A stretch of 32,000 bases of DNA, from contig NW_008806288.1 in the NCBI RefSeq assembly GCF_000400465.1, forward strand, positions 210,001 through 242,000, read 5' to 3'. The translations under genes and the position numbers were made by a program. Shown in pieces: positions 2,349 to 30,191 of this stretch (position 1 is the stretch's first letter; every line of letters begins with the position of its first letter). The notes under the pieces are model-generated. The model did no database searches and was not told where the DNA came from. It saw only the letters and a list, made by a program, of their open reading frames with translations. The DNA is from Wallemia ichthyophaga EXF-994 (lineage: Eukaryota; Fungi; Basidiomycota).

Positions 2349-5300
2349 ATGGACTTAGCGACTGTTTTACTCGGAAGTCTGTCACCAGACACAGCGCAGA
2401 GAATGTCTGCTGAGCAGTATCTCGAGACTTCTCAGTCAGATCCAAATTTCCCGCTCGCGCTCACAGATCTCATCGGCAACGTCGACAACCCAATACACAC
2501 GCGTCAGATAAGTTGATATCTCTCGCGCCCTTTTCCAAGCTTACAAGGTAGTCCACTCAGCTGGAATTATTCTCAGAAAGTACGTCAACGAACGCTGGTC
2601 GCCTTTCTTCGTCGCGTTCAAAGGAAGTCCACCACCACCAGATGTAAGTTTGAGCTATTTGAGCTATTTCCAGGGATTACATGTTGTACTGATACTATCA
2701 CAGATCAAGGATATCATTAGGCAACGCTTGTTCTCTCTCCTCTCAACCTCACACAAGCAGATCAGAACAGCTTGCGCATACGCCTTGGCTTCTATAGCCA
2801 GCTGCGACTATCCAGAGCAATACCCCTCTCTACTTCACGATCTCGCTCAGCTTTTCCAGCAAGCTCAAAGGGATGGTGTTCACGGCGCAATGAGAGTTCT
2901 TCTCGATTTCGTCAAGGCGGATCTTACAGAGACGCAACTCGTCCCTGTCACTCAGGAGCTGCTACCACTATTGCTTCACATCCTCAAAAACCCTACATAT
3001 GCAGACAGCACGCGTGGTTTGACTGTCGCTGTCCTACGCCAGTGCGTCCTTACTCTCGAAATGGTCAAATCGACCTACCCAGATGCTGTTAAAGAGATTG
3101 TGAATAGTGTTATACCAGTGTGGATTGACGGTTTCATTGCTCTTCTCCAAGTACCGCCTCAGAAGGAAACCAGGTCCCAGTGGGGTATTAGGTTCGAGAT
3201 CATTAAGACAATCGCATCCGTCTTCTCGACTTTCAAATCACTCATCACTACAAACAACAACATTGAAAGCTTGACACGCATTTTGATAGATCATTTAGTG
3301 ACACTGTTGCCCATCTTTTACGATCGACAGGTCTATGATACCCAGTCATATGAACAACCTGAAGGCGAAGAGGAAGACGACGGTGCTGCTGTTGAAGAGC
3401 TCATCTGTCCTATTATTGACTTGTTGACTGGTTTTGCGAACAACAAACATACTAAGGGTACCATCGAACAGGCTATTCCATTGCTTGTTAAACTTTCACT
3501 CGAATGGGGTCAAATGACTGTTGAAGATGTAAGCCGTGAGTTTTCGCTCATAAGTATGCTAAGAATCCCATAGGAAGACACCTGGATCTCAGATCCGAAC
3601 GCATTTGTTGATGACGAAGACGATGAAACGGAAAATTACAGCCTAAGAATAGCCACTCATGACTTGCTGGGAGTTCTGCTCGACAGATATCCAACACCAA
3701 CTGCAAAAGTTTTGGGTCCAGTGACTGCTGAGCTGTTGTCTACGTCCCAATCTGCTTCACAAGAGGGTAAGCAGCATTGGTGGAAGCCAATCGAAGCAGC
3801 ATTGGCAGCAATTGGCAACCTTTCTAATCAGCTTGGCGATGAGGACAACGAAGCAGCTGAGCACTTTGATTTGATGGGATTGTGTCAGAGTGTCGTTATG
3901 CAATTTGTAAACGCGAACGAGTCTCCTTTCTTACAAGGCAGAGCATTTGTATTTGCCTCCAAATTTGCCGGTAACCTGCCACCTGATCTCGCAGGCGCAT
4001 TCGTTGATGCTGCTGCCGCGATGCTCAACCACAGCAATGCAGGTGTACCGGTAAAAATCAGCGCTGTGCGCGCGATTCGCAACTTTGCCAATGGACTAGA
4101 TGATGAGATAGTGGGACCAAAAGCATTGCAGATTCTGTCATCGATCGTACCCCTTCTTGCCCACACTACAGAATCGACTTTAGGATTGCTTGTTGAAGCG
4201 GTGGATAGTGTACTCGATACGCTCAACACTGAAGCTTTGACAACAGAACTCGTTGTTCAGCTATCGTCAGTTATTCTGCCAGTCTGGGAGAAGAACGTCA
4301 ATGATCCTCTACTGGCTTCGCAGTTGGATGATCTCTTTGTCACGCTTTCTGAATCAGGCTCCAAGGCCCACTCGGCGCTTGTTGGCATAGCTGTCAAACC
4401 GCTTATCGGCGCTGTTAGTCGCGCTGCACCGGGACAGCCAGGTGGGGAGGATGTTGATGCGCGCTTGTTGGCAAGTTCCGCTATTCAACTTATCAATTCT
4501 ATCGTCAGGGCTAGAAGTGAAGGTCTAGAGCCTGGTGTGATAGCCACGACTTGTCCCGCCCTCTTCAACATACTCGAGAGTGCCGATGATCGCACACTAA
4601 TGCAAGATGGTATTGAGTTGTTGACGACATATATACGCAAAGACATACAAGGGTTGTTGGAATGGAAGAGTGACTCGCTCGTTCGGATTCTCAACATCAT
4701 TGCCAAACTTCTTCAAACGGATTCAGAAGGCAGTGCACTTTTTATCGGCGATGTCGTAACACATCTCTTCCGTAACGTGTCCAAGGATATACTCGACCCA
4801 GCTCTCCCCCAACTTCTCAAAGTAATCTTAGATAGATTGGCACTGAGTAAGACATCAGCATTCACACAGAACCTAGTTATACCATTCACATACCTGATTC
4901 ATACTCGCAGAGAAGTCATTTTGGAATATCTCTCTAATACTGCCGTGCTTGATGTTAATAGTAACAGTATGGTCAGTGGATTGGAGGTTTTGTTGAGAAT
5001 GTGGTGCGATAATGCAGAAACTTTTAGGGGTTTCTGGGCCATTAGAATTAGTACTCTTGCATTAGTGGATCTGTACACTAGTCAAGATCCTCGCCTAGAT
5101 AGCGTAATGGTCAAAGGCGACCAAATTATTGATGAGTCGAATCGGAACACCATTATGACGCGTTCCAAGACCCGCAATGCGCCTATTGAATTTACGAGCA
5201 TACCCTTCCCGCTCAAAGCCATCAAATTGCTTCTTGGTGAAATACAGAATGTGGGCACGTCGGCTGCTAAGTCTAACACTGTCAAAGATGTAGATGAGGA

Positions 5301-5678
5301 TGATGATGATGATGACTGGGAAGATGACGATCCACTTGCTGGTGCTGATGATGAGATCCATTATCTTTCAGGTGGGTTTTCGTGTGGCTAAGTTGTTTTC
5401 ATCTAACTTACGCCAAACAGATCTGCTTTCACCAGGTGGTGATCTTCTCGACGATGGTGATGCAGATGCTGAAGATATGCGCGATGATCCAGACTGTCAG
5501 ATCGACATTGGGGTTTGTTTTTACAAGTCAAAGCTGGCACAACTAACACCGCTCACAGAATTACTTGTCCGACTTCTTAAGAACGGCGTACACAGCTAAC
5601 ACATTCAACACACATGATAGATGCGCACATTTGAGTGCTCAAGAACAGGCTATATTTCAACATGCCATGGTAAATTGA
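2349..5678 (+). CDS. IPO9: Importin-9 / Kap114-like karyopherin-beta
   Basis: Exons 2349-2507, 2557-2643, 2704-3528, 3574-5371, 5421-5512, 5559-5678 (3081 nt). IBN_N motif RQSAGIILRKYVNERWSPFF, IASCDYPEQYPSLL, WISDPNAFVDDEDDE, HEAT-like helical content, acidic loop DEDDDDDDWEDDD and C-terminal D..DDP..QID motif. Confidence 0.9.
2508..2556 (+). other. Candidate AT-AC intron (U2-type signals), importin-9 intron 1, 49 nt
   Basis: CAG|ATAAGT...GCTTAC...GTCCAC|TCA GCT gives RQSAGIILRK. The GT-AG alternative 2512-2560 (donor GTTGAT) gives RQITGIILRK. Confidence 0.7.
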
Positions 5679-8459: not shown

Positions 8460-11400
8460 ATGAGTGGAAAAGAGAACGTGAGATTAACGCTATTGTTTAG
8501 AAATACGCTGACAATAGCAGCCCCAGCATGCTCAGTTTCAATACGCGGCCATGTCGTCGCTTGTATTGCAATCCAACAGGTCAGCGAGGCCAGATGAACC
8601 AACAGGCCAGGCAGAAACCTTGGCTGGCAAAGTAACCGCAAGAGATATGGGTACACGAGCCACAAGAGAAACTGTGAAAGATAAGGACAAGAAGAAGCTC
8701 AAATCGCAGATGGACGACGATGGCTCTTCCACAGCCAAAAGATCAGCTTCTAATAAAGGCTACGGATACAGCAATATTTTAGAAGCTACACAAGATATGG
8801 AGGGTTTGGATTACAGGCCTAGAACAGCGGAAACCACTCAAGTCTACGAGTTGATTCTCTCAGTCGTCCATTCGATACTCGGTGATACTCCTCAAGATAC
8901 TATCAGATCAGCTGCCGACGTTGCCCTCGGTGTTCTCAAAGATGAAAGCTTGAAAGATTTCGACAAGAAACGTGAGATTGAAGGTTTCGTCGGCCATATT
9001 TCTGAGGAGCTCTACTCCCAGCTGCTAGGCCTCTCCAAGAAAATAACCGACTACGGCGATGCAGATGTCGTTATGGCCGATCCGGACGCTGAAAAGAAAG
9101 AGGGCGAGATCGACGATGAAGGTGTCGCACTTCTTTTCGAAGATGATAACGAGGAAGATGACGACGAAGAGCGTTACGAGGTTGGTGATGATCAGTCAGA
9201 AGATGAAGAGAAAAATGATGTCGAAGAGGAACAAGAGCAGCTTGACGATGATGGCAATGCACTCGTCATTGGCGGAGAGAAGAAACAGTCAGCTGAATCG
9301 CGTGGCAAGCTAGCAGCCACCGACGTTGATGCTTTCTGGCTTCAAAGAATTATCGCTCAACACTACCCTGACCCTGTTGAAACTACCGAGAAGACGTCCG
9401 CGGTATTCGATCTTCTGGCATCTGAAGCTGGTGCAAGAGAAGTCGAGAATGGGTTGATGGATCTATTTGATTACGAGAGAGACCTTTTTAAACTTGTTCA
9501 ACTACTGCTCATCAACAGAGATTTGATATATTGGTGCACAAGATTAGCGAGAGCATCCGATGACGAGAAAATGGATATTGAAGTCACAATGCGTGAGAAG
9601 GGTGTTGGATGGATTCTTCGCGAGCTTAAGGGTGAAAAGCCAAAGCGGGAAACTGGTGAAATGGCTATGGAGGTTGATCAGAGTAAACAAACCGTACCAA
9701 GCAAGGCTACCCTCGCTCCTGGATCCACCGTCGCTCCAAAGCGCGTTGTAGACTTGGATAGCATGACTTTCTCGGCCGGTGGTCATCTGATGTCAAACAA
9801 GAGGGTCAAGCTCCCTGATGGCTCATTCAAGCGCTCGAAGAAAGGATACGAGGAAATTCATGTCCCTGCTCCTAAAGTTACTCCTGTCAAGGAGGGTGAA
9901 TTGGTTCCACTTACCAAGTTGCCGGAGTGGACGAGAAAAGCATTCCCAGGTACCAAAGCGCTCAATAGAGTGCAGTCTAAGCTTTACCCTGTCGCTTTTG
10001 GTCAAGATGATCCAATTCTGCTTTGTGCCCCAACTGGTGCAGGAAAGGTGAGTATGTACAGAAAGAATGACTTATGCTAACTTTTTTTTCAGACAAATGT
10101 GGCAATGCTTACTATTTTAAATACAATTTCACAATATAGAGACGAAGAGACTGGTGCTATTGATTTGGATGCGTTCAAGATTGTTTATGTCGCACCAATG
10201 AAGGCGCTTGTACAAGAGCAAGTCGGCAGCTTCAGCAAGAGACTGGAGCCATTTGGCGTCAAAGTTAATGAGTTGACTGGTGATAGCCAACTCACCAAGC
10301 AACAGATTGCTGAAACTCAGGTTATTGTCACTACACCAGAGAAGTGGGACGTCATCACCCGTAAATCAACTGACACATCGTACACTAACCTCGTAAGACT
10401 GATGATTGTTGACGAGATCCACTTGCTTCACGATGACAGAGGTCCAGTACTGGAGTCGATCATTGCGCGTACAATTCGTAAAATGGAGCAAAACAACGAA
10501 TACACGAGAGTTGTCGGTCTGTCAGCTACTCTTCCAAACTATCAAGACGTAGCAGCATTCCTCAGAGTGGACATCAACAAAGGTCTCTTCTACTTTGACG
10601 GCAGTATGCGTCCGTGTCCATTGCAGCAGCAATTTGTAGGTATCACCGAGAAAAAAGCTATCAAGCGTTTCTCCACAATGAACGAGGTTTGTTACGAGAA
10701 AGTGTTGGAGCAAGCTGGCAAAAACCAAGTCATTGTCTTTGTTCACTCGCGCAAAGACACTGCAAAGACAGCTAAATTCCTCCGTGATATGGCCATCGAA
10801 AAAGATACTATCACTCAATTTGTCAACGCTGATTCAGCGAGCAGAGCCATTCTGACAGAGGAAGCTGAGAATTCCAGTAGTGGTGATATGAAAGACTTGC
10901 TTCCATTTGGTTTCGCTATTCACCACGCTGGTATGACTCGAGCAGACAGAAACGCATCTGAGGATCTTTTCGATAAAGGACACGTCCAAGTGTTGGTCTG
11001 TACGGCTACATTAGCCTGGGGTGTCAATTTGCCTGCACACAGTGTTATTATCAAGGGTACACAGATCTACAATCCAGAGAAAGGTAGATGGTGCGAATTA
11101 TCTCCACAAGACGTCTTGCAAATGCTTGGTCGCGCAGGTAGGCCGCAGTATGATACATTCGGAGAGGGTATTATTATCACAAACCATACTGAGCTACAAT
11201 ACTACCTCAGTTTGATGAATCAGCAGTTGCCAATTGAGTCGCAATACGTTAGTCGACTCGTCGACAACCTCAATGCAGAAGTCGTTCTCGGATCGATCCG
11301 TAATCGTGACGAAGCTATTCAGTGGCTCGGCTATACTTACTTGTACATTAGAATGCTGCGCTCACCAAGCTTGTACTCTGTTGGCGAGGACTATGATGAT

Positions 11401-14400
11401 GACCTTGGGCTGGTGCAGAAGCGCTCCGATATCGTCCACACTGCCGCTGTTCAATTAGATAAGGGAGGTTTGGTGAAGTATGATCGCAAGTCTGGAATAC
11501 TACAAGGTACTGAATTGGGTAGAATCGCTTCCCACTTCTACATCACAAATACTTCCATGGCTGCTTATATGAAGAATCTCCGTCCGACGATGAGCTTGAT
11601 TGAGTTGTTCAGAGTGTTTGCTTTGTCCAATGAGTTCAAACTCATTCCAGTACGTCAGGAAGAGAAGCTCGAGTTACAAAAATTGATGGAGAGAGTCCCG
11701 ATACCCGTAAAGGAATCAGTCGATGAGCCAGCCGCCAAAATCAACGTGCTTCTGCAAGCATTTATCAGTGATTTAAGATTAGATGGTTTGGCATTAGTTA
11801 GTGATATGGTCTTTGTTCAACAGTCAGCTGGTCGTATCATAAGAGCTATTTTTGAAATTTGCTTGAAGAGAGGCTGGGCAGCGCTCACGCGTGATGCGCT
11901 GGATTTGTGCAAGATGATCGACAAGAAGTTATGGAAAACGATGACTCCACTTCGTCAATTTAAGGGTATTCGCCAAGATGCATTCCAGGAAGTCGTCAAA
12001 AAAGCTGAAAGAAAGGAATTTCCGTGGTACAGATACTTTGATCTTGATCCACCAGAACTTGGCGAGTTAATCGGTAATCCTAAAGCTGGAAAATTAGTGC
12101 ACAAGATGGTACACTCGTTCCCAAAGCTTAACTTGCAAGCCAATGTTCAACCCATCACAAGGTCGTTGCTTAGGATCGACCTCAGCATTCAACCTGATTT
12201 CGAGTGGGATGAGAAGAATCACGGTACTTCCGAGCTTTTCTGGATTTTAGTTGAAGATGTCGACGGCGAGATTATTCTTTTCCACGACACTTTCCTTCTG
12301 CGCGAGAGATACTCACAGGATGAACACTACGTCACTTTGACTGTGCCAATGTCAGAGCCTATACCGCCAAATTACTATGTTACAGTGATGAGCGATAGAT
12401 GGTTGCATTCAGAGACGACGCTGCCAGTCTCATTCAAGCACCTCATTTTGCCAGAGAAGTTCCCACCTCCAACCCCTCTTCTTGATCTGCAACCATTGCC
12501 GATATCAGCGCTGCACAACAAAGCCTACGAGAACATTTACACTCCATCAAATGACAACGAATATGCCATCGAGTCATTCAATAAAATCCAGACGCAAGTA
12601 TTCCAAGCTCTTTACACCTCAGATGATAGCGTCATTATTGGCGCTCCTACTGGATCTGGAAAGACAATTTGTGCAGAGTTTGCTTTGTTGAGATTCTGGC
12701 AAAAGAGCGGGTCTTCTAGAGCGGTTGTCATTGAGCCATTCGATGATGTCGTTAGCCAGAGAGTGGATGAGTGGTCGCAGAAGTTTAGTCGTCTTGATAA
12801 AGAGATAGTCGGATTGACTGGTGATATGTCTGCTGACTTGAAGTTGTTGGAGCGCGGCGATGTTATTATAGCAACTCCTCAACAGGTGAGTAAAAATCAA
12901 TAAACACGCTTATGCGTACTAAAGGCTTGCTAAAGTGGGATATGCTTTCACGTAGATGGAAGCAGCGCAAGAATGTCCAAAACATAGGTCTCTTTGTTGC
13001 TGATGAAGTTCAACTCATTGGCCAGCCTGATATCGGACCAACTTACGAAATCATTGTGTCGAGAATGAGATACATCGCCGCACAAACTGAAAATCCCACT
13101 CGTATTGTTGCTTGTTCAGTCTCACTATCTAATGCGAAGATTATCGGTGATTGGATCGGTGCTGGCTCACAAGGTATTTTCAACTTCTCACCAAGGTGTG
13201 TATTGTGTATGTTGGAGAATCTCCACTAACGAAACCCAGCTCTCGTCCACTGCCAATGGAGGTTCATTTGCAAAATTACTCAACGCCTCACTTCCCATCA
13301 TTGATGCTGTCGATGGCCAAGCCAGCTTACTTGTCGATTACTGAATGGGCAGCTAGCAAGTCCGTCATTGCATTCGTACCATCTCGCAAGCAGTGCTACC
13401 TCACTTCTCAAGATATTCTCACTTACTGCCAAGCTGATGGTAGTGACAGGAGATTCTTAAACATTGAGTTGTCAGAACTTGAACCACACTTAGAGCACGT
13501 TCAAGACGAGGAATTGAAAGAGGTTTTGAAATACGGTATTGCATACTACCATGAAGGTCTATCTAAGCAGGACAAGGTTATAGTAGAGACGCTCTACAAT
13601 GCCAACGCTATACAGCTTGTCATAGCATCGAGAGATGTCGCGTGGTCAATCCCAATGAGATGTTTCATGGTTATTATTATGGGTGTTCAAGCATTCGACG
13701 GTCGTGAGCATCGCTACGTCGACTATCCAGTCACCGACATTCTCCAAATGATTGGCCGTGCATCGAGACCAGCTCAAGATAGCACATCCAAATGTGTATT
13801 CATGTGTCAATCATCTCGCAAAGACTATTTCAAGAAGTTCCTGGCTGAGCCCCTTCCAGTAGAATCACACCTGAAATACGTTCTCCCAGATCACTTCAAT
13901 GCCGAGATTGTGACCAAGACTATTGAGAACAAGCAGGATGCTATTGATTATCTCACTTGGACTTACTTCTATAGACGTATGCAGTCTAATCCTAACTTTT
14001 ACGAGTTGTCAGGTACTTCACACGCTCATCTTTCTGACTCGCTTTCGGAGCTTGTTGAAGATACGCTAAACCAGCTGGTTGAAGCTAAGTGTATTACTAT
14101 TGAGGATGAGATGGATACCCTGCCACTCAACTTGGGTATGATCGCTAGTTACTACTACATTTCATCATTCACCGTGGAAACTTTCCAATCTTCACTTAAG
14201 GCTACTACTAAGCTGAAGGGTATTTTGGAAATCGTCGCTAGTGCCGCTGAATTTGAATTGGTACCTATTAGAAAGGGAGAGGTAGGTAACTTTTTGCGTA
14301 TGAAATGAATATTGATGAACAATTCAAGGCCAACATTCTTCGCAGATTATATGACAGAGTTCCCGTGAAGCTTGATCGTATCGATTTTGAGTCACCTTAC

Positions 14401-15233
14401 TTTAAGACATTCGTACTCCTCCAAGCACATTTCAGCAGGTTACAATTACCAGCTGATTTATTACAAGACCAAGCAGAGGTATTGAAGAGAGTGCTGAATT
14501 TGCTTTCGGCAGCTGTGGACGTAATGTCTAGTAATGGATACTTGGGTGCGATTGGAGCGATGGATCTCTCGCAGATGGTTGTACAAGCTATCTGGGATCA
14601 AGATGTCTCTATCAAGCAAATACCACATTTCAATGAGCAAATCATCTCAAGAGGTAAAGAAATGCAGATTGAGAGTGTATATGATATTATGGAGATGGAA
14701 GATGAAGATAGGTCCAAGTTGTTGGCTGGATTAGACAAGTTTAGGGTACAAGATGTAGCCAAGTTTGTCAACAACTACCCATCTATTGATGTGGAGTACG
14801 ATATCGACACTAAGCAGGATATGAGAGCTGGTGAACCAATACCACTCACTGTTAGATTGAGTCAGGATGTCGAGGAGGATGAGGAAGTAGACCAGAGTGT
14901 AATGGCACCATTTTACCCATTGCACAAGATGTGTAATTGGTGGTTAGTTGTTGGTGACACGAGATCTAAATCACTCCTGGGTATCAAGAAGGTATCGGTT
15001 GCGAAATCACTCAATGTCAAGTTAGACTTCCAGTTAGAAGAGGAGGGTACATATAAGGATGTCAAGTTGTATTTGATCTGTGATAGTTACAGCGGATGTG
15101 ACCGTAAGTGTTAAAATTTTTAGCATAGTTTAAACTAATAAGTAATCACACAGAGGACTTCCAATTACCTGAATTAGAGGTGCAAGAAGGATTAGAATCA
15201 GATGAAGATGAAGATGAACAAATGTCAGAGTAA
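8460..15233 (+). CDS. BRR2: U5 snRNP 200 kDa RNA helicase Brr2
   Basis: Exons 8460-8477 (18-nt micro-exon MSGKEN), 8521 (or 8518)-10047, 10093-12885, 12936-13195, 13240-14281, 14329-15103, 15154-15233 (about 2165 codons). N-terminal [12 protein letters not shown] motif, PWI-like region, APTGAGKT, DEIH, SATL, two Ski2-like helicase cassettes each followed by a Sec63 unit. Confidence 0.97.
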
Positions 15234-24278: not shown

Positions 24279-27200
24279 TTAATTGTTTCTACTCTTTTTG
24301 TTGCTGCGTGTATCTGAAATACTCGATGAAGCTCGCTTATGCGAAGGCTGAGGACTCATCGTGTTGTATCTATTCCTAAAGTCATTCAGATTGCTCACTG
24401 CCATCTTCTCCAATGCCTTGGCTGATAATGAAACAGGCGCATCTGCTCCATTGTAAAGTATTGCGTTGTGCGTCATTAACTTTATATCACCCTCAAACGC
24501 ATCCACCGACGGATATTGATCTTTTTCCAGTTTCGTCTGTATCAAAGACAGATCTCTCATGTTCTCTTTAGGTATTACTTCGTTATAATTTGGAATACCC
24601 AATGCAATTGGATCAACCTATATATAATCGTTAGCATGTTTCAATTACGCCATTCCAAAACGTACCGGCTGTAAGAACCAGAAAGCATGCTCATTCTTGT
24701 ACCATACTTTCATCATCGATAGCAAGCTCCTCTTTTCATTGTGCGGGATCTTCGGCGTCATTAGTATCTTCCACTCTTTCCTCAAAGCTCTCTCCACTGG
24801 GTCGCAAGTCTGCGCAGTCAACATACTTGTCTCACCAGGACCATTGAATTGTCTGCAATTCTTAAATATTTGTTCTATATCTCCGATGAATTGATCGCCA
24901 TTCTCGTACTTTTTCTCGTCCAACTTCCTGTTTATTGTAGAGAAGTCCATCGGATGCTTGATCTCATCCAGATACGTTGGACAACCATGCAATATGGGGT
25001 CGACTGGCTGTAAGAATATTGCGGCCTCAGGCATGCTCATCAGTTTTCTAATCAAAATCTTGGCTTTTCTGTTATCAAGATGACCGTCCGGTAGCTTTGA
25101 AGGAGTGCTTGAAGATGCTTTGGGAGGTGGAGGCATTTTTTGCACTGGTTTGTTATCTGACAGAGCCAGAAGCTCATCATCGAGTGCGTCTTCGTTGCCA
25201 TTCTGCACTGGAGCAGAAGTAGGAGCTGGAACAGGCGCAGGCGTAGACGTAGGTTCATTTTCTTCTGGTAGACTCTGTTGAGCTGGAACTGACTGTGCTT
25301 TTTCCATAGGTTCTTCTGGTGCCTCTGATACCGTGACCGGAGCTTCAGGAATAGGTTGAGATTGAGATTCTTGCATACTTGGTGCTGCAACAGGCTGTGT
25401 GTCAGCTGGTGTAGCGTCAGTCTGGATTTTTTCTGCGGTTGATTCTGGTTCAGGCGCATCTGATTGAGCAGTTTGCGGTGCTGCCGCTGTATCCACCACC
25501 CCATTAGCTTCAGGTTGCTTTTCCTTATCGCCATTACTATCAACAGGCTTAGGCGGTTTCAGCTTAAGAGAAAGCCTAGGCTTGGCTGGTTGTGCTGGAG
25601 GTGGACTTGGTTTAGATGGCGAAGAAATTGCCGCAGCCGGTTCTGGTTCTGGTTCTGGTTCTAGTGCTGGTGCTGGTTCTGGCCCCGTCGGAGGACTTGT
25701 CATCTTATCATTGACTTGCACAGTAGGCTTACGTCCTGTAGCGGCATTGAGCGTGTTCGTCATTCGCTGCCATTGCTTATCGAAGACTGCATCTAGCTCC
25801 AGCGCGGTCTTGTGCACTGGTGACGATGGACCATTGTAAGTCGTTGCATTTTGAACGATCAACTTAAAATCAGCTTCATATTCGAACCTGTTGGCGTAGT
25901 GTCCACCATCCAACTTAGCTCCCATGGTTCCAATGTCCATTGGCGTTTTAATCACCGAAAAGTAATCAGGCGCACCGTCTCTGACTGGGTCAACTGGATA
26001 TAAGAACCACCCTGCCAACTTGTGTGATTGTAAGCGCTTGTGAAGAGCTCTACAAGCAGTGACGTCTTGACTAGCCATACCATTCCTTTGAGCTTGAGGA
26101 ACAGCTTTGTCTTTCTTCTTTCTAAGCGAAACATTCAATCCACCTCCACCAACAGGTTCAGTAACGTGTCCGTTTGCTGTACCATTCATCTCTGGTACTT
26201 CAGGCTCAGGTGTCTCATCTTCCATACGAACCGGCACAACGGGATCCATACTGACTGGTACAGGCTGCGCTGGTTGTGACGTCGGCGCCTTGAGCTTGAT
26301 CTTCATCGGCATTGCAGATGCTGGCTCTGCTGGCTGATGAGGTGCTGGGGCAGGTAACTTGAATTTAACTTTAGGTAACGGCTCAGCATTGCCTTTGTAT
26401 AGAACATCACAGAGCTGTAGCAGCGTCCATCTAACGTGGTAATCGACTTGAGGGGATAGCAACACAGCCATGATACCCATTCTCAAACTAGCAATTTTTC
26501 CGACATCCTTTCGAAGCCCCTTCAACTGCCGATCCAATTCGCTCTTACTAGAATCTTTCTCTTTCGCTTCGCTCAGCTTAGCATCTTCTTCAATGAATTG
26601 CGGTTCCTTCTTCTGAATAGCAGCCAATTCCCCAGTGGCCATGAGAACAATCAGCGATTCGATCATCGATTGGGCAAGCGACCTTCTGACTACTCTTGAT
26701 TCATCGTATCCAAGTATTGTTGAGAAATATTGAATAATTGGTCGATGGCGGAGAGAACCGAGCAGCATCAAGCAATCGAAAGCGACTATCCTTAAAGGAG
26801 GATAGTTACCCTCTCTGCACGAACTGTAAGTAACGTAAAGGGACGTGTTATGTTTTCTCACCTTGTATAAGGAATAAACAAAGGTGCGTTGTATGGTAGT
26901 ATACCGGCAATCATTAGTTTGACGTTGAATTCAAGGGTAGCTACGGATATAACGTTCTGATAAGATGGTACGAGTCTATCCATGGTTCTATACCTCTCAA
27001 CCTCTTCGACAGCAGCACGTCGAATGAGGGGACCAAATGGATGGTCATCTGCATCCGGATCCTCGTCCTGTTGAAGTACGCTGGCCTCATGCTGAACCGT
27101 CGGCACTAGTGCGATAGCCAAGCAGTTGATGATACCAGATAGGTAATAGCTGTCTGAGTACTAAAACAGAGTAAGCGGTGAGACTCTCAAACAAAAGTCA

Positions 27201-30191
27201 CTCACTCTATTTGTCGAATTGTCATTGTATTTGAGCTGATCGACGAGGAACTCTCTAATGTTCAGCATAGATCTACTCGTTTGATCTCTGATAGAAGTTA
27301 AAGAAACGATGACAGCCTTACGAACGAAATATTCGCTGAGGTCGTCAAAGTTGTTAGCCAGCGGTATACACTTGAAACCAAAAGGATCCATAATTTCTTG
27401 CGGAGGTGGATAGCAGAATCTTGACTGGAATATCTTAAAGAGGTGGAACATTCCAACATAATCCAATTCAGGAGTTGCACAGGTATGCAGCACCATAGCA
27501 GCTTCCATTCTAATTCTAAAGAAGTAATTGGTGACCAGAACAGTCCTGGTTAGTTGAGTGGAAACCAGTTTGGAAGGAATAGACTTGAGCGCGTGGACAG
27601 CTTCCAACTGAGCAACAACATCTCTATCACGCTGTAGTTGGGACACCCACATGAAATCAGGTTGCTCAAAAGTAATCATGGAGATCCATTCAAAGTCTGC
27701 ATCAACTCTGATCCACTCGTACGTTGCTTGTGACATAGCAGCTTCATCATCCTCGGTCCAATCTTCTACCTTCCATCTGTCTCTCTCCGATTCCTGTTCC
27801 CAATCGTTGAGCTGGAAACCCAAATCTATCATACCAATAGCCTCAGCAGCCTCTTCATCACCTTGGGCAGCAGCAGCAGCAGCAGCTTGTCTAGCTTGAT
27901 AACGCTTTGTGTTCCTTCTAACACGCTTATATTTCGTGTTGAAAGGCACATCGAATCTCTTGTTGGGTTCCTTTATATCCAAAACATGCTCATATGGTGT
28001 ACCATCAGCTTCGTGAATTCTAACAGTCATCTGACCTTCAAAAACTTGGGTTGGCCTGTTAAAATGAATTTCAGGTGTATCGGGTGTATGTGCGTCATAT
28101 GCTGGTGATTCTTGCTTTACTGTCATTTCAACGCACATTTTCTTTCTGTTAAAATTGGCTCCAATCATGAATCTAGGTGTACCAGATCCAAAAATCCATT
28201 GATCAGCAAACGTTCTTAAATCAACTCCGGCAACTTTTCTGCAAGTCCTCAAGAATCCATTTGTTGATATAATAACGTCACCAGAAAGCGCGCCCAGGAA
28301 GATTTTTGGCAGAACTCTAGACAATCCATGAGCTGTACCAGATTTAGATAGCTTTCTATCGAGAATGTGCAAGACAAGTGGTGCTTTCAAGAGTAAAAAT
28401 GGTGCGTCGTTATCATTTGGTGGTTCAAGCGCATTTGGTACGCTAAGTGGTGGTAGTTGGCCCGTATCATTCATTGCTAAACGATCCATATCCTTCTTCA
28501 TTCTAAAGAAATACTCATTGTTACCCATAGATTTCTTCAAAAAAAGATTTGCAATATAGCTAGCTAAGCCTTGAACTAGCCACATATCAGACCAAGATCT
28601 TGGCATGATATTAATACCAGACCATTGAGTGGCAAGAGCGTGTGATATTTTATGGCGAGTATCCAACGTCTGTTCGATAGCAGATGCAGGGTGCAGAAGA
28701 TCTAGAGACATGATAACGACAGTAGAATACACAGTGACGTCTACCGGAGGATCATGCACGAAAACGACTTTGAAGGAAGAAAATGGGTACATACCATGCT
28801 CTGAGCTGTAGAAATGAAGAGCACGTGGAACTATAGCTACGGAGGCGGCCAACTCTTTAGCAGAACCAGGTGGACCAAAAGCGTGTAGGGAAGTGGATTG
28901 GGTGGTGCTAGAAGTATGCGGTATTGGTAGGACGTTGAAAGGACCAGCTGCAAAAGCAATATGCTGTACGGAAGTGGGTAGAGATTGAGCAAAGTGGAAG
29001 ATAGTCTTGGAGGATATCGATGGATGAGCGACTTGTTCGACTAAATCACCTGAAGAGACGACAACGACAGGCTCATCTTGTTCACCTTCAACGCCATCCT
29101 CGCCAACAGCACTTAAAAAGCGTGGAGTGATATATTCCAATTCCCACGTACATCTCTCCCAAAGACTGTCAATACAGGGGACCCAACAGCGGGCAGCATC
29201 GGGGCATGTAGGAGAGGTGTAAATGTGAGGGATGCGATAAGGGGAAGTTTCTGTTGGCTTGACGACTTGTAGGCCTTCGAATGGATGAGTGATAGAAAAC
29301 TCAACGAAGATGGTGAGAGGGGCGAAGTCTTGAGAGTTGTTAGCAGCCTCCTTGCTTTCCTTCTCCTTTTCTTTCTCTTTTTCTTTCTCGCTTTGCTTTT
29401 GCTTCTCTTTCTCATTCTCGTCGTGCTTTTCTTGGTTGTGGTTCTCTTTATCCTTCTCTTTGTCATCCATGTGCTCTGCTTGCTCGTCTTTATGCACTGA
29501 TTGCTCTGTACCATTCTCTGCGTGGCCTGCATCTTTCTCTGCTTGCTCTTTATCGTTATTATCTTTCTCAACGTCTGTCTCGTCAATCCGCTTCTCCTTA
29601 TCTTGAGCAGAAGGCTCATCAGGAAGTAGGGAAACCTGATCGCCTACGCCACGCGAGATACAACGAGGCGGGAGGACAATACTCAGCTCGCCTTCATCGC
29701 CTTCAGAAAGGGCAGAATAGACTTTACGCTTGAGTTCGGGATGGCGGTGTACGTCGATCTTGCCGTCTTTGCCATGGCGTTCGCTAAGGGCGATATTCGA
29801 CTGAGGGTCGAAGTGGGTGAAATCAGCGTGAGCGGGGGCAGCGTGAGCGTGAGGTGGGGTGACGAGGACTCTGTGGATATCTGTGGAGGTGTGAGCCAAA
29901 TGGGCGTAAAGGATCACCGCCCAACTCACTCGCCTGCCTCGAATGGATGTTGACCGTCTTGAGAGCGTCTGTAGTGGGAGTGATAGTGAGTTCGGTGAAT
30001 CCCTGAAGAGTGTAAGCGTGATTTCAAGGCGTGCAATTGCCGCTTCACGCACCCTGAAAACACCGCTGAAATCGACCTCGAGACAGACTCGCTGGTGGGT
30101 TGTTTGCGGGCGTTAGAATGACCGCGTAAATTATCAGTATAATCACTTATAAGCTAAAGCCGCGCTTGTGCGCTTCTCGTGAAACGGCCAT
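24279..30191 (-). CDS. TAF2: TFIID subunit Taf2 (aminopeptidase-like fold) fused to three C-terminal bromodomains
   Basis: Exons 30191-30151, 30101-30053, 30002-29930, 29880-27206, 27160-26862, 26814-24666, 24617-24279 (5625 nt, 1874 aa). Motifs FSLTHQRVCLEVDF, ARCWVPCID, WSDMWLVQG, GQMTVRIHEADGTPYEH, EWIRVDADFEW, WVSQLQRDRDVVAQLEA. Three bromodomains follow (see findings). Confidence 0.95.
30102..30150 (-). other. AT-AC intron (U2-type signals), TAF2 intron 1, 49 nt
   Basis: AGC TT|ATAAGT...TTCTAAC...GCAAAC|A ACC CAC CAG gives RGFSLTHQRV. Read-through hits TAA, and the nearby GT lies after that stop. Confidence 0.8.

Follow-up and report, generated by a model that had tools for sequence, protein, structure and literature searches.

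A conserved AT-AC first intron in TAF2 of Wallemia ichthyophaga, a probable U2-type orthologue of TAF2 intron 1 of animals

Introduction

U2-type AT-AC introns, which start with AT and end with AC and are removed by the major spliceosome, are usually discussed as animal curiosities. The survey of Sheth et al. (2006) listed 15 such U2-dependent AT-AC II introns in human, 6 in mouse and 3 in Drosophila, found none in worm or Arabidopsis, and included one that is conserved between the human and Drosophila TAF2 genes (PMC1557818). In the CENATAC study, TAF2 intron 1 served as the U2-type AT-AC control for the major spliceosome in reverse transcription PCR (RT-PCR) (PMC8280824). The metazoan representatives share a strong /ATAAGT consensus (PMC5029451, PMC1557818; slashes mark exon-intron borders and carets spliced junctions throughout), and yeast is able to splice an AT-AC intron made by engineering (PMC5029451). 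As for fungi, Larue and Roy (2023) saw no convincing minor introns in Ascomycota and Basidiomycota, phyla whose minor small nuclear RNAs (snRNAs) are mostly or entirely gone (PMC10639083), and 13 AT-AC introns (0.014%) were reported in Ganoderma lingzhi, one of them, in another gene, validated by RT-PCR (PMC11590231). Our literature search found no paper linking TAF2, AT-AC and fungi, or reporting fungal conservation of TAF2 intron 1. Here we describe the first intron of the TAF2 gene of the basidiomycete Wallemia ichthyophaga EXF-994, which lies in a stretch of 32,000 nucleotides (nt) of contig NW_008806288.1 (positions 210,001 to 242,000, forward strand; the window, whose first letter is position 1).

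With human and Drosophila TAF2 intron 1 the window intron has in common the gene, the interrupted Leu codon, the phase, the TT/ATAAGT donor and the AC end, and like the human one it is the first coding intron (PMC8280824). It differs in its length of 49 nt (animal copies measure 70-140 nt and can reach kilobases), in its basidiomycete host, and in a fungal CTAAC-type putative branch site at 11 nt from the 3′ end. The AT-AC introns of SCN4A and SCN5A, as far as the account in PMC1557818 goes, resemble it in their termini, their U2-type 5′ splice site and their long conservation; they belong to an unrelated, animal-only gene family, and their U2 dependence is experimental, whereas that of the window TAF2 intron is deduced. 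U12-type AT-AC introns share only the terminal dinucleotides; the TAF2 intron has neither the 5′ site ATATCCTT nor the branch site TCCTTAAC. The Ganoderma lingzhi introns are likewise rare, likewise basidiomycete and likewise a cause of broken gene models, but the validated one sits in a gene with a zf-C4pol domain, and that report mentions neither TAF2 nor any orthology across kingdoms (PMC11590231). Finally, the yeast introns of Parker and Siliciano (1993), in which a G1 -> A change is rescued by turning the last G into C, follow the same logic of A first and C last, as they are summarized in PMC5029451 and PMC1557818; those introns are artificial, whereas the TAF2 intron is natural and ancient.

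Results and Discussion

Structure of the TAF2 5′ end

The host gene of the intron is identified as TAF2 by its Pfam matches (TAF2_3rd, TPR_TAF2_C and Peptidase_M1) and by PDB matches to human and yeast TAF2. Its open frame is intact over about 1,850 codons and holds all TAF2 domains; the exon structure is given in Table 1. Exon 1 codes for MAVSREAHKRGFS followed by TT, the first two bases of a Leu codon, and in the unspliced message the frame runs directly into TTA TAA, an in-frame stop made by the TT of the exon end and the ATAAGT donor. A first-pass annotation of the window had proposed that an AT-AC intron starts at this place, and both the sequence and the reading frames bear this out. Removal of the intron joins AGCTT^AACCCAC, builds the Leu codon TTA and gives the product MAVSREAHKRGFSLTHQRVCLEVDFSGVFR. 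The N-terminus so obtained, RGFSLTHQRVCLEVDF, aligns to residues 24-80 of human TAF2 (RPYKLTHQVVC; RPYKLTHQVVCINNINF...GFVELTIFPT) and to Komagataella Taf2 (FKIAHQKV; FKIAHQKVQLDVDL), both taken from solved TFIID structures, in line with the earlier claim that the splice is needed for the conserved TAF2 N-terminus. The intron also has the dimensions of its ordinary neighbours, as had been noted before: introns 2 and 3 are of nearly the same length, and their branch-like motifs lie 10-11 nt from the 3′ end, as does TTCTAAC in intron 1.

Alternative structures were enumerated exhaustively: each ATG was combined with each GT-AG, GC-AG or AT-AC pair that leads into exon 2 without a shift of frame. 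The enumeration yielded no unspliced open reading frame (ORF) at the TAF2 5′ end and no GT-AG or GC-AG pair that preserves the residues L-T-H-Q. The earlier remark that the GT-AG solution ending at 30092 loses the motif is thus upheld, and no other canonical pair keeps it either. That solution (30185 to 30092, giving MA-RVCLEVDF) is possible on paper, with a poor donor (GTTTCA) and with the conserved residues gone, and was rejected. A start at the upstream ATG 30334, or the use of further GT-AG or GC-AG pairs, was rejected as well, for loss of the conserved residues or for a non-consensus donor. A protein search with the spliced N-terminus returned ORF-style fragments only, and no full-length or transcript-derived protein of the window species.

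Table 1. Coordinates of the TAF2 gene in the window
Feature	Position	Strand	Remarks
TAF2 coding exon 1	30151..30191	minus	ATGGCCGTTTCACGAGAAGCGCACAAGCGCGGCTTTAGCTT; ATG 30191-30189; from reading frames
AT-AC intron 1, 49 nt	30102..30150	minus	ATAAGTGATTATACTGATAATTTACGCGGTCATTCTAACGCCCGCAAAC; phase 2, in the Leu codon before T-H-Q
Intron 1 5′ splice site	30145..30150	minus	ATAAGT, the U2 consensus GTAAGT with G1 -> A
Putative intron 1 branch site	30112..30118	minus	TTCTAAC, predicted from sequence; putative branch A 30113, 11 nt from the terminal C at 30102
Intron 1 3′ terminal dinucleotide	30102..30103	minus	AC (in CAAAC)
Exon 2	30053..30101	minus	codes for (L)THQRVCLEVDFSGVFR; aligned to human and Komagataella TAF2
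Intron 2, 50 nt	30003..30052	minus	ordinary GT-AG, GTGCGT...CAG; control intron across loci
Exon 3	29930..30002	minus	codes for GFTELTITPTTDALKTVNIHSRQA
Intron 3, 49 nt	29881..29929	minus	ordinary GT-AG, GTGAGT...CAG
Exon 4, long	27206..29880	minus	Peptidase_M1-like, TAF2 Ig-like and first TPR parts (Pfam)
Rest of TAF2, approximate model	24279..27160	minus	exon 5 27160-26862, short intron 26861-24, later exons; stop codon at about 24281-24279

Conservation in fungal relatives

Fungal relatives (loci numbered from L001) were reached from ORF fragments matching exon 4, on contigs from Logan, ENA and JGI. The distant set consists of L006-L008 and of 75 further loci, which a single scan of JGI metagenomes yielded when an alignment of the HPELKRKVYSAL region was used as the query; the samples are of soil, mycorrhiza and fungus-garden type. 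After collapsing identical sequences, 60 distinct relatives carry the motif. An AT-AC intron occupies the TAF2 site in 59 of these 60, in the same codon and phase, among them three close relatives and 55 Agaricomycete-like metagenome or Logan sequences; the remaining one is intronless. The comparison of related TAF2 5′ ends that the first-pass annotation had suggested as a check turned out in its favour: the position is kept, and the AT and AC ends are constant in all 59 intron-bearing relatives although the interior of the intron diverges, a conservation far beyond chance.

The three close relatives (L001, L002 and L005), with about 75% amino-acid identity, have an exon 1 that ends in GGCTTTAGCTT, the donor TT/ATAAGT, a CTGAC or CTAAC motif and a CACAAAC end, and exon 2 opens with AACC (L001, L002) or GACT (L005). 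The interior of their intron 1 is unalignable; exon 1 differs by synonymous changes only in L005 and codes for a near-identical peptide in L001 and L002. In the distant relatives the arrangement is GGNTTCTCNAT/ATACGT...CTGAC...TAC/TAGY CAY CAR AAR. Counted over the 59 introns, the donor is ATACGT (39), ATAAGT (14), ATGCGT (5) or ATAAGC (1); A at +1, T at +2 and G at +5 are present in all 59, and T at +6 in 58. At intron 2, the GT-AG neighbour, these loci are less strict, with G at +5 in 50 of 57 and T at +6 in 33 of 57. A motif of the CTGAC, CTAAC or CTTAC type is found 11-20 nt from the 3′ end in every one of the 59 relatives, and none of them has the U12 donor (ATATCC, or [AG]TATCC) or, near the 3′ end, the U12 branch site TCCTTAAC (TCCTTRAY). 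Some genomic relatives are intronless and read through as RGFSVTNQKV (L069) or RGFILSSQKV (L075/L076), so that the encoded continuity across the junction is independently attested; these lineages either never had intron 1 or lost it.

Another contig, L050 (Ga0315919_1000011, 1-1998), comes from the metagenome collection; behind a leader of 168 nt its reading frame stays open for at least 610 codons. It is without at least five introns that are present in its genomic relatives L057 and L059 (about 85% exon nucleotide identity), and the more distant L052 and L006 are likewise interrupted at five or more places over the same stretch. Being intronless where its relatives have five introns or more, L050 appears to be derived from messenger RNA (mRNA), and is probably a metatranscript or a retrogene. 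Its junction, GGCTTCTCTAT^TAGTCATCAG (TCTAT^TAGT), is the exact AT-AC splice product of its relatives, and shows the AC, and not the AG 3 nt downstream, in use as 3′ splice site.

In the loci L006-L083 the last 8 nt of intron 1 are unusually conserved, as GT(A/C)T(A/C)TAC. The AC is nearly always followed by TAG, because the Ser codon is always AGY, never TCN, and the Agaricomycete-like loci therefore have an AG that goes unused 3 nt beyond the AC. For Agaricomycetes, use of this TAG as the acceptor of an AT-AG splice was considered and ruled out, as L050 keeps TAGT. A U12-like reading of GTATCCTTT after ATGC, present in part of the Agaricomycete copies (group of L034 and L056), was discarded too, being limited to one clade, out of frame and without a U12 branch site.

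Animal orthologues

Animal loci were found by a search with the human TAF2 N-terminus, and those that were annotated or ORF-bearing were retrieved (Table 2). Salmon, flea, fly and tick read AAATT/AT[A/G]AGT...AC/, so that AT-AC termini are present in four of the five animal loci examined. In all five, the intron splits the Leu codon (TT/N) preceding (T/A/S)-H-Q. This phase 2 codon is TT/A in the window and in the flea and TT/G in salmon, fly and tick, and the protein alignment with human TAF2 pairs it with the window Leu. Host gene, codon and phase thus agree throughout. As the gene, the codon, the phase, the termini and the TT/ATAAGT donor are all shared, we consider common descent the sole reasonable reading, and with animal and fungal introns orthologous the AT-AC state would predate the animal-fungal split, which dates to the order of a billion years ago.

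Table 2. TAF2 intron 1 in five animal loci
Species (locus)	Exon 1 end	Donor	Intron length	3′ end of intron	Start of exon 2
Oncorhynchus nerka (L087)	CCTTTTAAATT	ATAAGT	140 nt	CACAC	GACT CAC CAG
Sarcophaga bullata (L084)	CCATTTAAATT	ATAAGT	75 nt	CAGCAC	GGCC CAT CAG
Ctenocephalides felis (L085)	CCGTTTAAATT	ATAAGT	70 nt	TTTTAC	AGCT CAT CAA
Rhipicephalus microplus (L089)	CTTTACAAATT	ATGAGT	134 nt	GTTCAC	GTCC CAC CAG
Limulus polyphemus (L086)	AAATT	ATAAGT	2446 nt	TGCAA (AT-AA or ambiguous border)	ATCC

The Limulus intron (KI900150.1, about 3082-5507) reads AT-AA, or TA-AA when the border is slid by one base; its 3′ end is either a real variant or an assembly error. A hamster locus (L088, Cricetulus griseus JAPKFS010002487.1) is intronless and reads AAATT^AACC CAT CAG. 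This sequence records the junction as spliced in mammals, and the eight bases at its centre (TTAACCCA) recur in the predicted TT^AACCCAC of the window. Around 34090-34200 this locus has a TAF2 coding stretch (...RPYKLTHQVICINNINFQ) inside a gene annotated as a hypothetical protein, and it looks like a processed TAF2 retrocopy that was absorbed into another gene model.

Intron class and proposed mechanism

From these comparisons we interpret the minus-strand intron 30150-30102 as a constitutive U2-dependent AT-AC type II intron and as the direct orthologue of animal TAF2 intron 1, and put the probability of this interpretation at about 0.9. In the window as in the 59 relatives the intron begins with AT and ends with AC, and beyond +1 the donor agrees with the /ATAAGT consensus (AT[A/G][C/A]G[T/C] in the relatives). 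The putative branch motif is of U2 type and is spaced as in introns 2 and 3, and a branch site of the U12 kind is lacking; at the 5′ site, too, the window has ATAAGT and not the U12 sequence ATATCCTT. The first-pass annotation had classed ATAAGT-type AT-AC introns as U2-type rather than U12-type, and had stated that Basidiomycetes are generally reported to be without the minor spliceosome; the literature agrees on both counts (PMC1557818, PMC5029451 for the former; PMC10639083 for the latter).

Several points weigh against this interpretation. The junction in the window organism is predicted from homology and from relatives, and the proposed U2 dependence is read from sequence signals together with the literature on Dikarya. 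Of the 59 fungal sequences, many are close relatives of one another and do not amount to 59 independent lineages. The AT-AA or ambiguous border in Limulus implies that the last base of the intron is not absolutely fixed, and L050, which is compared with the genomic loci of relatives, may be a metatranscript or a retrogene. There is, moreover, a second AC at 30100-30099, 3 nt downstream of 30102 (AACAAC/), which is in frame as well and could be an alternative 3′ site; it would yield GFSFHQ, one residue fewer, and appears disfavoured by homology. An AAC/AAC or AAC/GAC arrangement at the 3′ site is also seen in L001, L002 and L005.

In the mechanism that we propose, drawn from splicing biochemistry as summarized in PMC1557818 and PMC5029451, U1 and then U6 would read positions +2 to +6 (UAAGU), which are perfect consensus, and TTCTAAC would be the branch site with which U2 pairs. 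An A at +1 is expected to be tolerated in the first catalytic step. In the second step the first and last bases of the intron make a non-Watson-Crick contact, in which A-C would stand in for G-G, and because of this replacement the AC at 11 nt past the branch A could serve as 3′ splice site. Removal of the intron would then produce the conserved N-terminal strand RGFSLTHQRVCLEVDF of the TFIID subunit TAF2, and without it translation would end at the TAA that the 5′ splice site itself provides. The near-perfect consensus at all the remaining signal positions fits a compensation for the odd termini. Persistence of the AT-AC state is probably due to a two-hit barrier: a single change, to GT-AC or to AT-AG, would cripple the second step. 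Escape by precise loss through an mRNA intermediate would be possible, and loss is seen (L069, L075/76).

Alternative explanations

Most AT-AC introns of animals and plants are of the U12 type (PMC7072748, PMC1557818), which is what would speak for removal of the TAF2 intron by the minor spliceosome. We hold this to be very improbable, as the 5′ site is ATAAGT instead of ATATCCTT, none of the 59 copies has a TCCTTAAC branch site, Basidiomycota are reported to be without minor introns and to have most or all of their minor snRNAs gone (PMC10639083), and the orthologous human intron has been handled experimentally as a major U2-type intron (PMC8280824). That the intron is an ordinary GT-AG one in which two bases were miscalled, or have mutated in a decaying pseudogene, finds its sole support in the rarity of AT-AC and is scarcely credible: the conservation of AT and AC across relatives refutes a sequencing or assembly error, the same two bases being present in 59 assemblies of different projects and in four animal genomes, and the remainder of the gene keeps, as described above, its open frame of about 1,850 codons and every TAF2 domain.

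A different view would take exon 1 for a conserved upstream ORF of 14 codons and let TAF2 be translated from a downstream start or from a GT-AG message without F-x-L-T-H-Q. The ATG...TAA stretch indeed forms a complete and conserved small ORF, and one GT-AG pair exists on paper, but the alternative donors are poor (GTTTCA), and without the splice no in-frame ATG precedes THQ, the next in-frame Met lying far inside exon 4. The sequence G-F-S-L-T-H-Q that AT-AC splicing forms across the junction also matches the intronless homologues, human TAF2 and yeast Taf2, and the joined sequence is present in the complementary DNA-like contig L050 and in the hamster retrocopy. We hold an upstream ORF in place of a first coding exon to be very improbable.

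A possible role in regulation

The first-pass annotation went further and held that the intron gates expression of an essential TFIID subunit. This claim was pure inference, is unsupported by our analysis, and we regard a regulatory role as doubtful. Such a role would not compete with U2-dependent splicing but overlie it: a slow second step would lead to retention of the intron, retention to termination at the TAA after 14 codons, and the balance would tune the TAF2 dosage. In its favour are the in-frame TAA at the 5′ site, which the window clade shares with fish, fly, flea and Limulus; the conservation of donor and branch motif, stricter than in the neighbouring GT-AG intron; the observation of Sheth et al. 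that introns with A1 and a final C splice 'less efficiently' in mutational tests (PMC1557818); and the striking fact that animals and fungi alike have kept the AT-AC state. On the other side, the Agaricomycete donor AT/ATACGT forms no immediate TAA there, and the donor of the tick is ATGAGT; loss of the intron in several fungal lineages (L069, L075/76) came with no visible compensation; and persistence without any function is explained by a mutational trap, since neither end can change unless the other does. In the most far-reaching version, an intron more than a billion years old, inherited from the animal-fungal ancestor and possibly derived from a U12-type intron of still older eukaryotes, would have been retained not only through this trap: its slow second step and the stop in its donor would provide a conserved post-transcriptional control of the dosage of a TFIID subunit. 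We consider this version equally speculative.

Gene annotation and wider significance

The prediction that standard gene finders will misannotate this intron is plausible and is illustrated by the TAF2 model P0066 of Sarcophaga bullata, which opens with an unrelated exon and then translates the 3′ portion of intron 1 (...FFLYPFTSTAHQIV). At this locus (L084, QOCX01019267.1, 824-2170) the true exon 1 (...RPFKL, ending in AAATT) lies unused 75 nt upstream of exon 2. Several other TAF2 entries in the databases begin at internal methionines. Programs that accept only GT-AG and GC-AG introns would give this essential TFIID subunit a truncated model or a wrong start in hundreds of genomes of fungi and animals.

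The first-pass annotation was unaware that a U2-type AT-AC intron 1 had already been described in human and Drosophila TAF2, and the intron is hence less novel than was implied. It is best seen as the fungal orthologue of a documented animal intron; new are the depth of its conservation and its presence in a phylum reported to lack the minor spliceosome. TAF2 intron 1 thereby ranks among the oldest traceable non-canonical introns of the major spliceosome, and the fungal copy, by virtue of this host phylum, would provide a natural control for U2 dependence. Laboratory mushrooms would offer a tractable system in which to ask if AT-AC ends serve regulation or are simply an accident that became frozen.

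Other features of TAF2 and of the window

Past the C-terminal TAF2 repeats, the frame of the window gene continues into three bromodomains (Pfam PF00439; 24279-26823, minus strand), and the same bromodomain ORF directly follows TAF2 in the close relative L001 (6013-6339). In TFIID, bromodomains are otherwise found on TAF1 in animals and on Bdf1 in yeast. As predicted from this frame, the window gene is a TAF2-bromodomain fusion of about 1,850 residues. TAF2 also contains a highly charged, low-complexity insert of ~100 residues (DKEKRIDETDVEKDNNDKEQ...KEKEKEKEKESKE; window about 29330-29780, minus strand), which separates the N-terminal strands from the conserved FAPLTIFVEF region, and no counterpart of it was noticed in the Agaricomycete ORFs or in human TAF2.

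The window as a whole is eukaryotic and gene-dense, with 45% GC and compact genes of few introns, and also encodes BRR2, a GATA factor, importin-like genes and UBA3. An Rfam search of the 32-kb window detected no RNA family, a result that covers the window and says nothing on minor snRNAs elsewhere in the genome. BRR2, the orthologue of SNRNP200 (8551-15114, plus strand), consists of few long exons and carries the plug, PWI, two helicase cassettes and Sec63; with its few exons it illustrates the intron-poor genome and has no direct bearing on the TAF2 intron. In keeping with a basidiomycete whose lineage falls outside the well-sampled classes, the best matches of the UBA3 fragment are solely to Basidiomycota, at a flat 66-72% identity across Agaricomycotina, Pucciniomycotina and Ustilaginomycotina.

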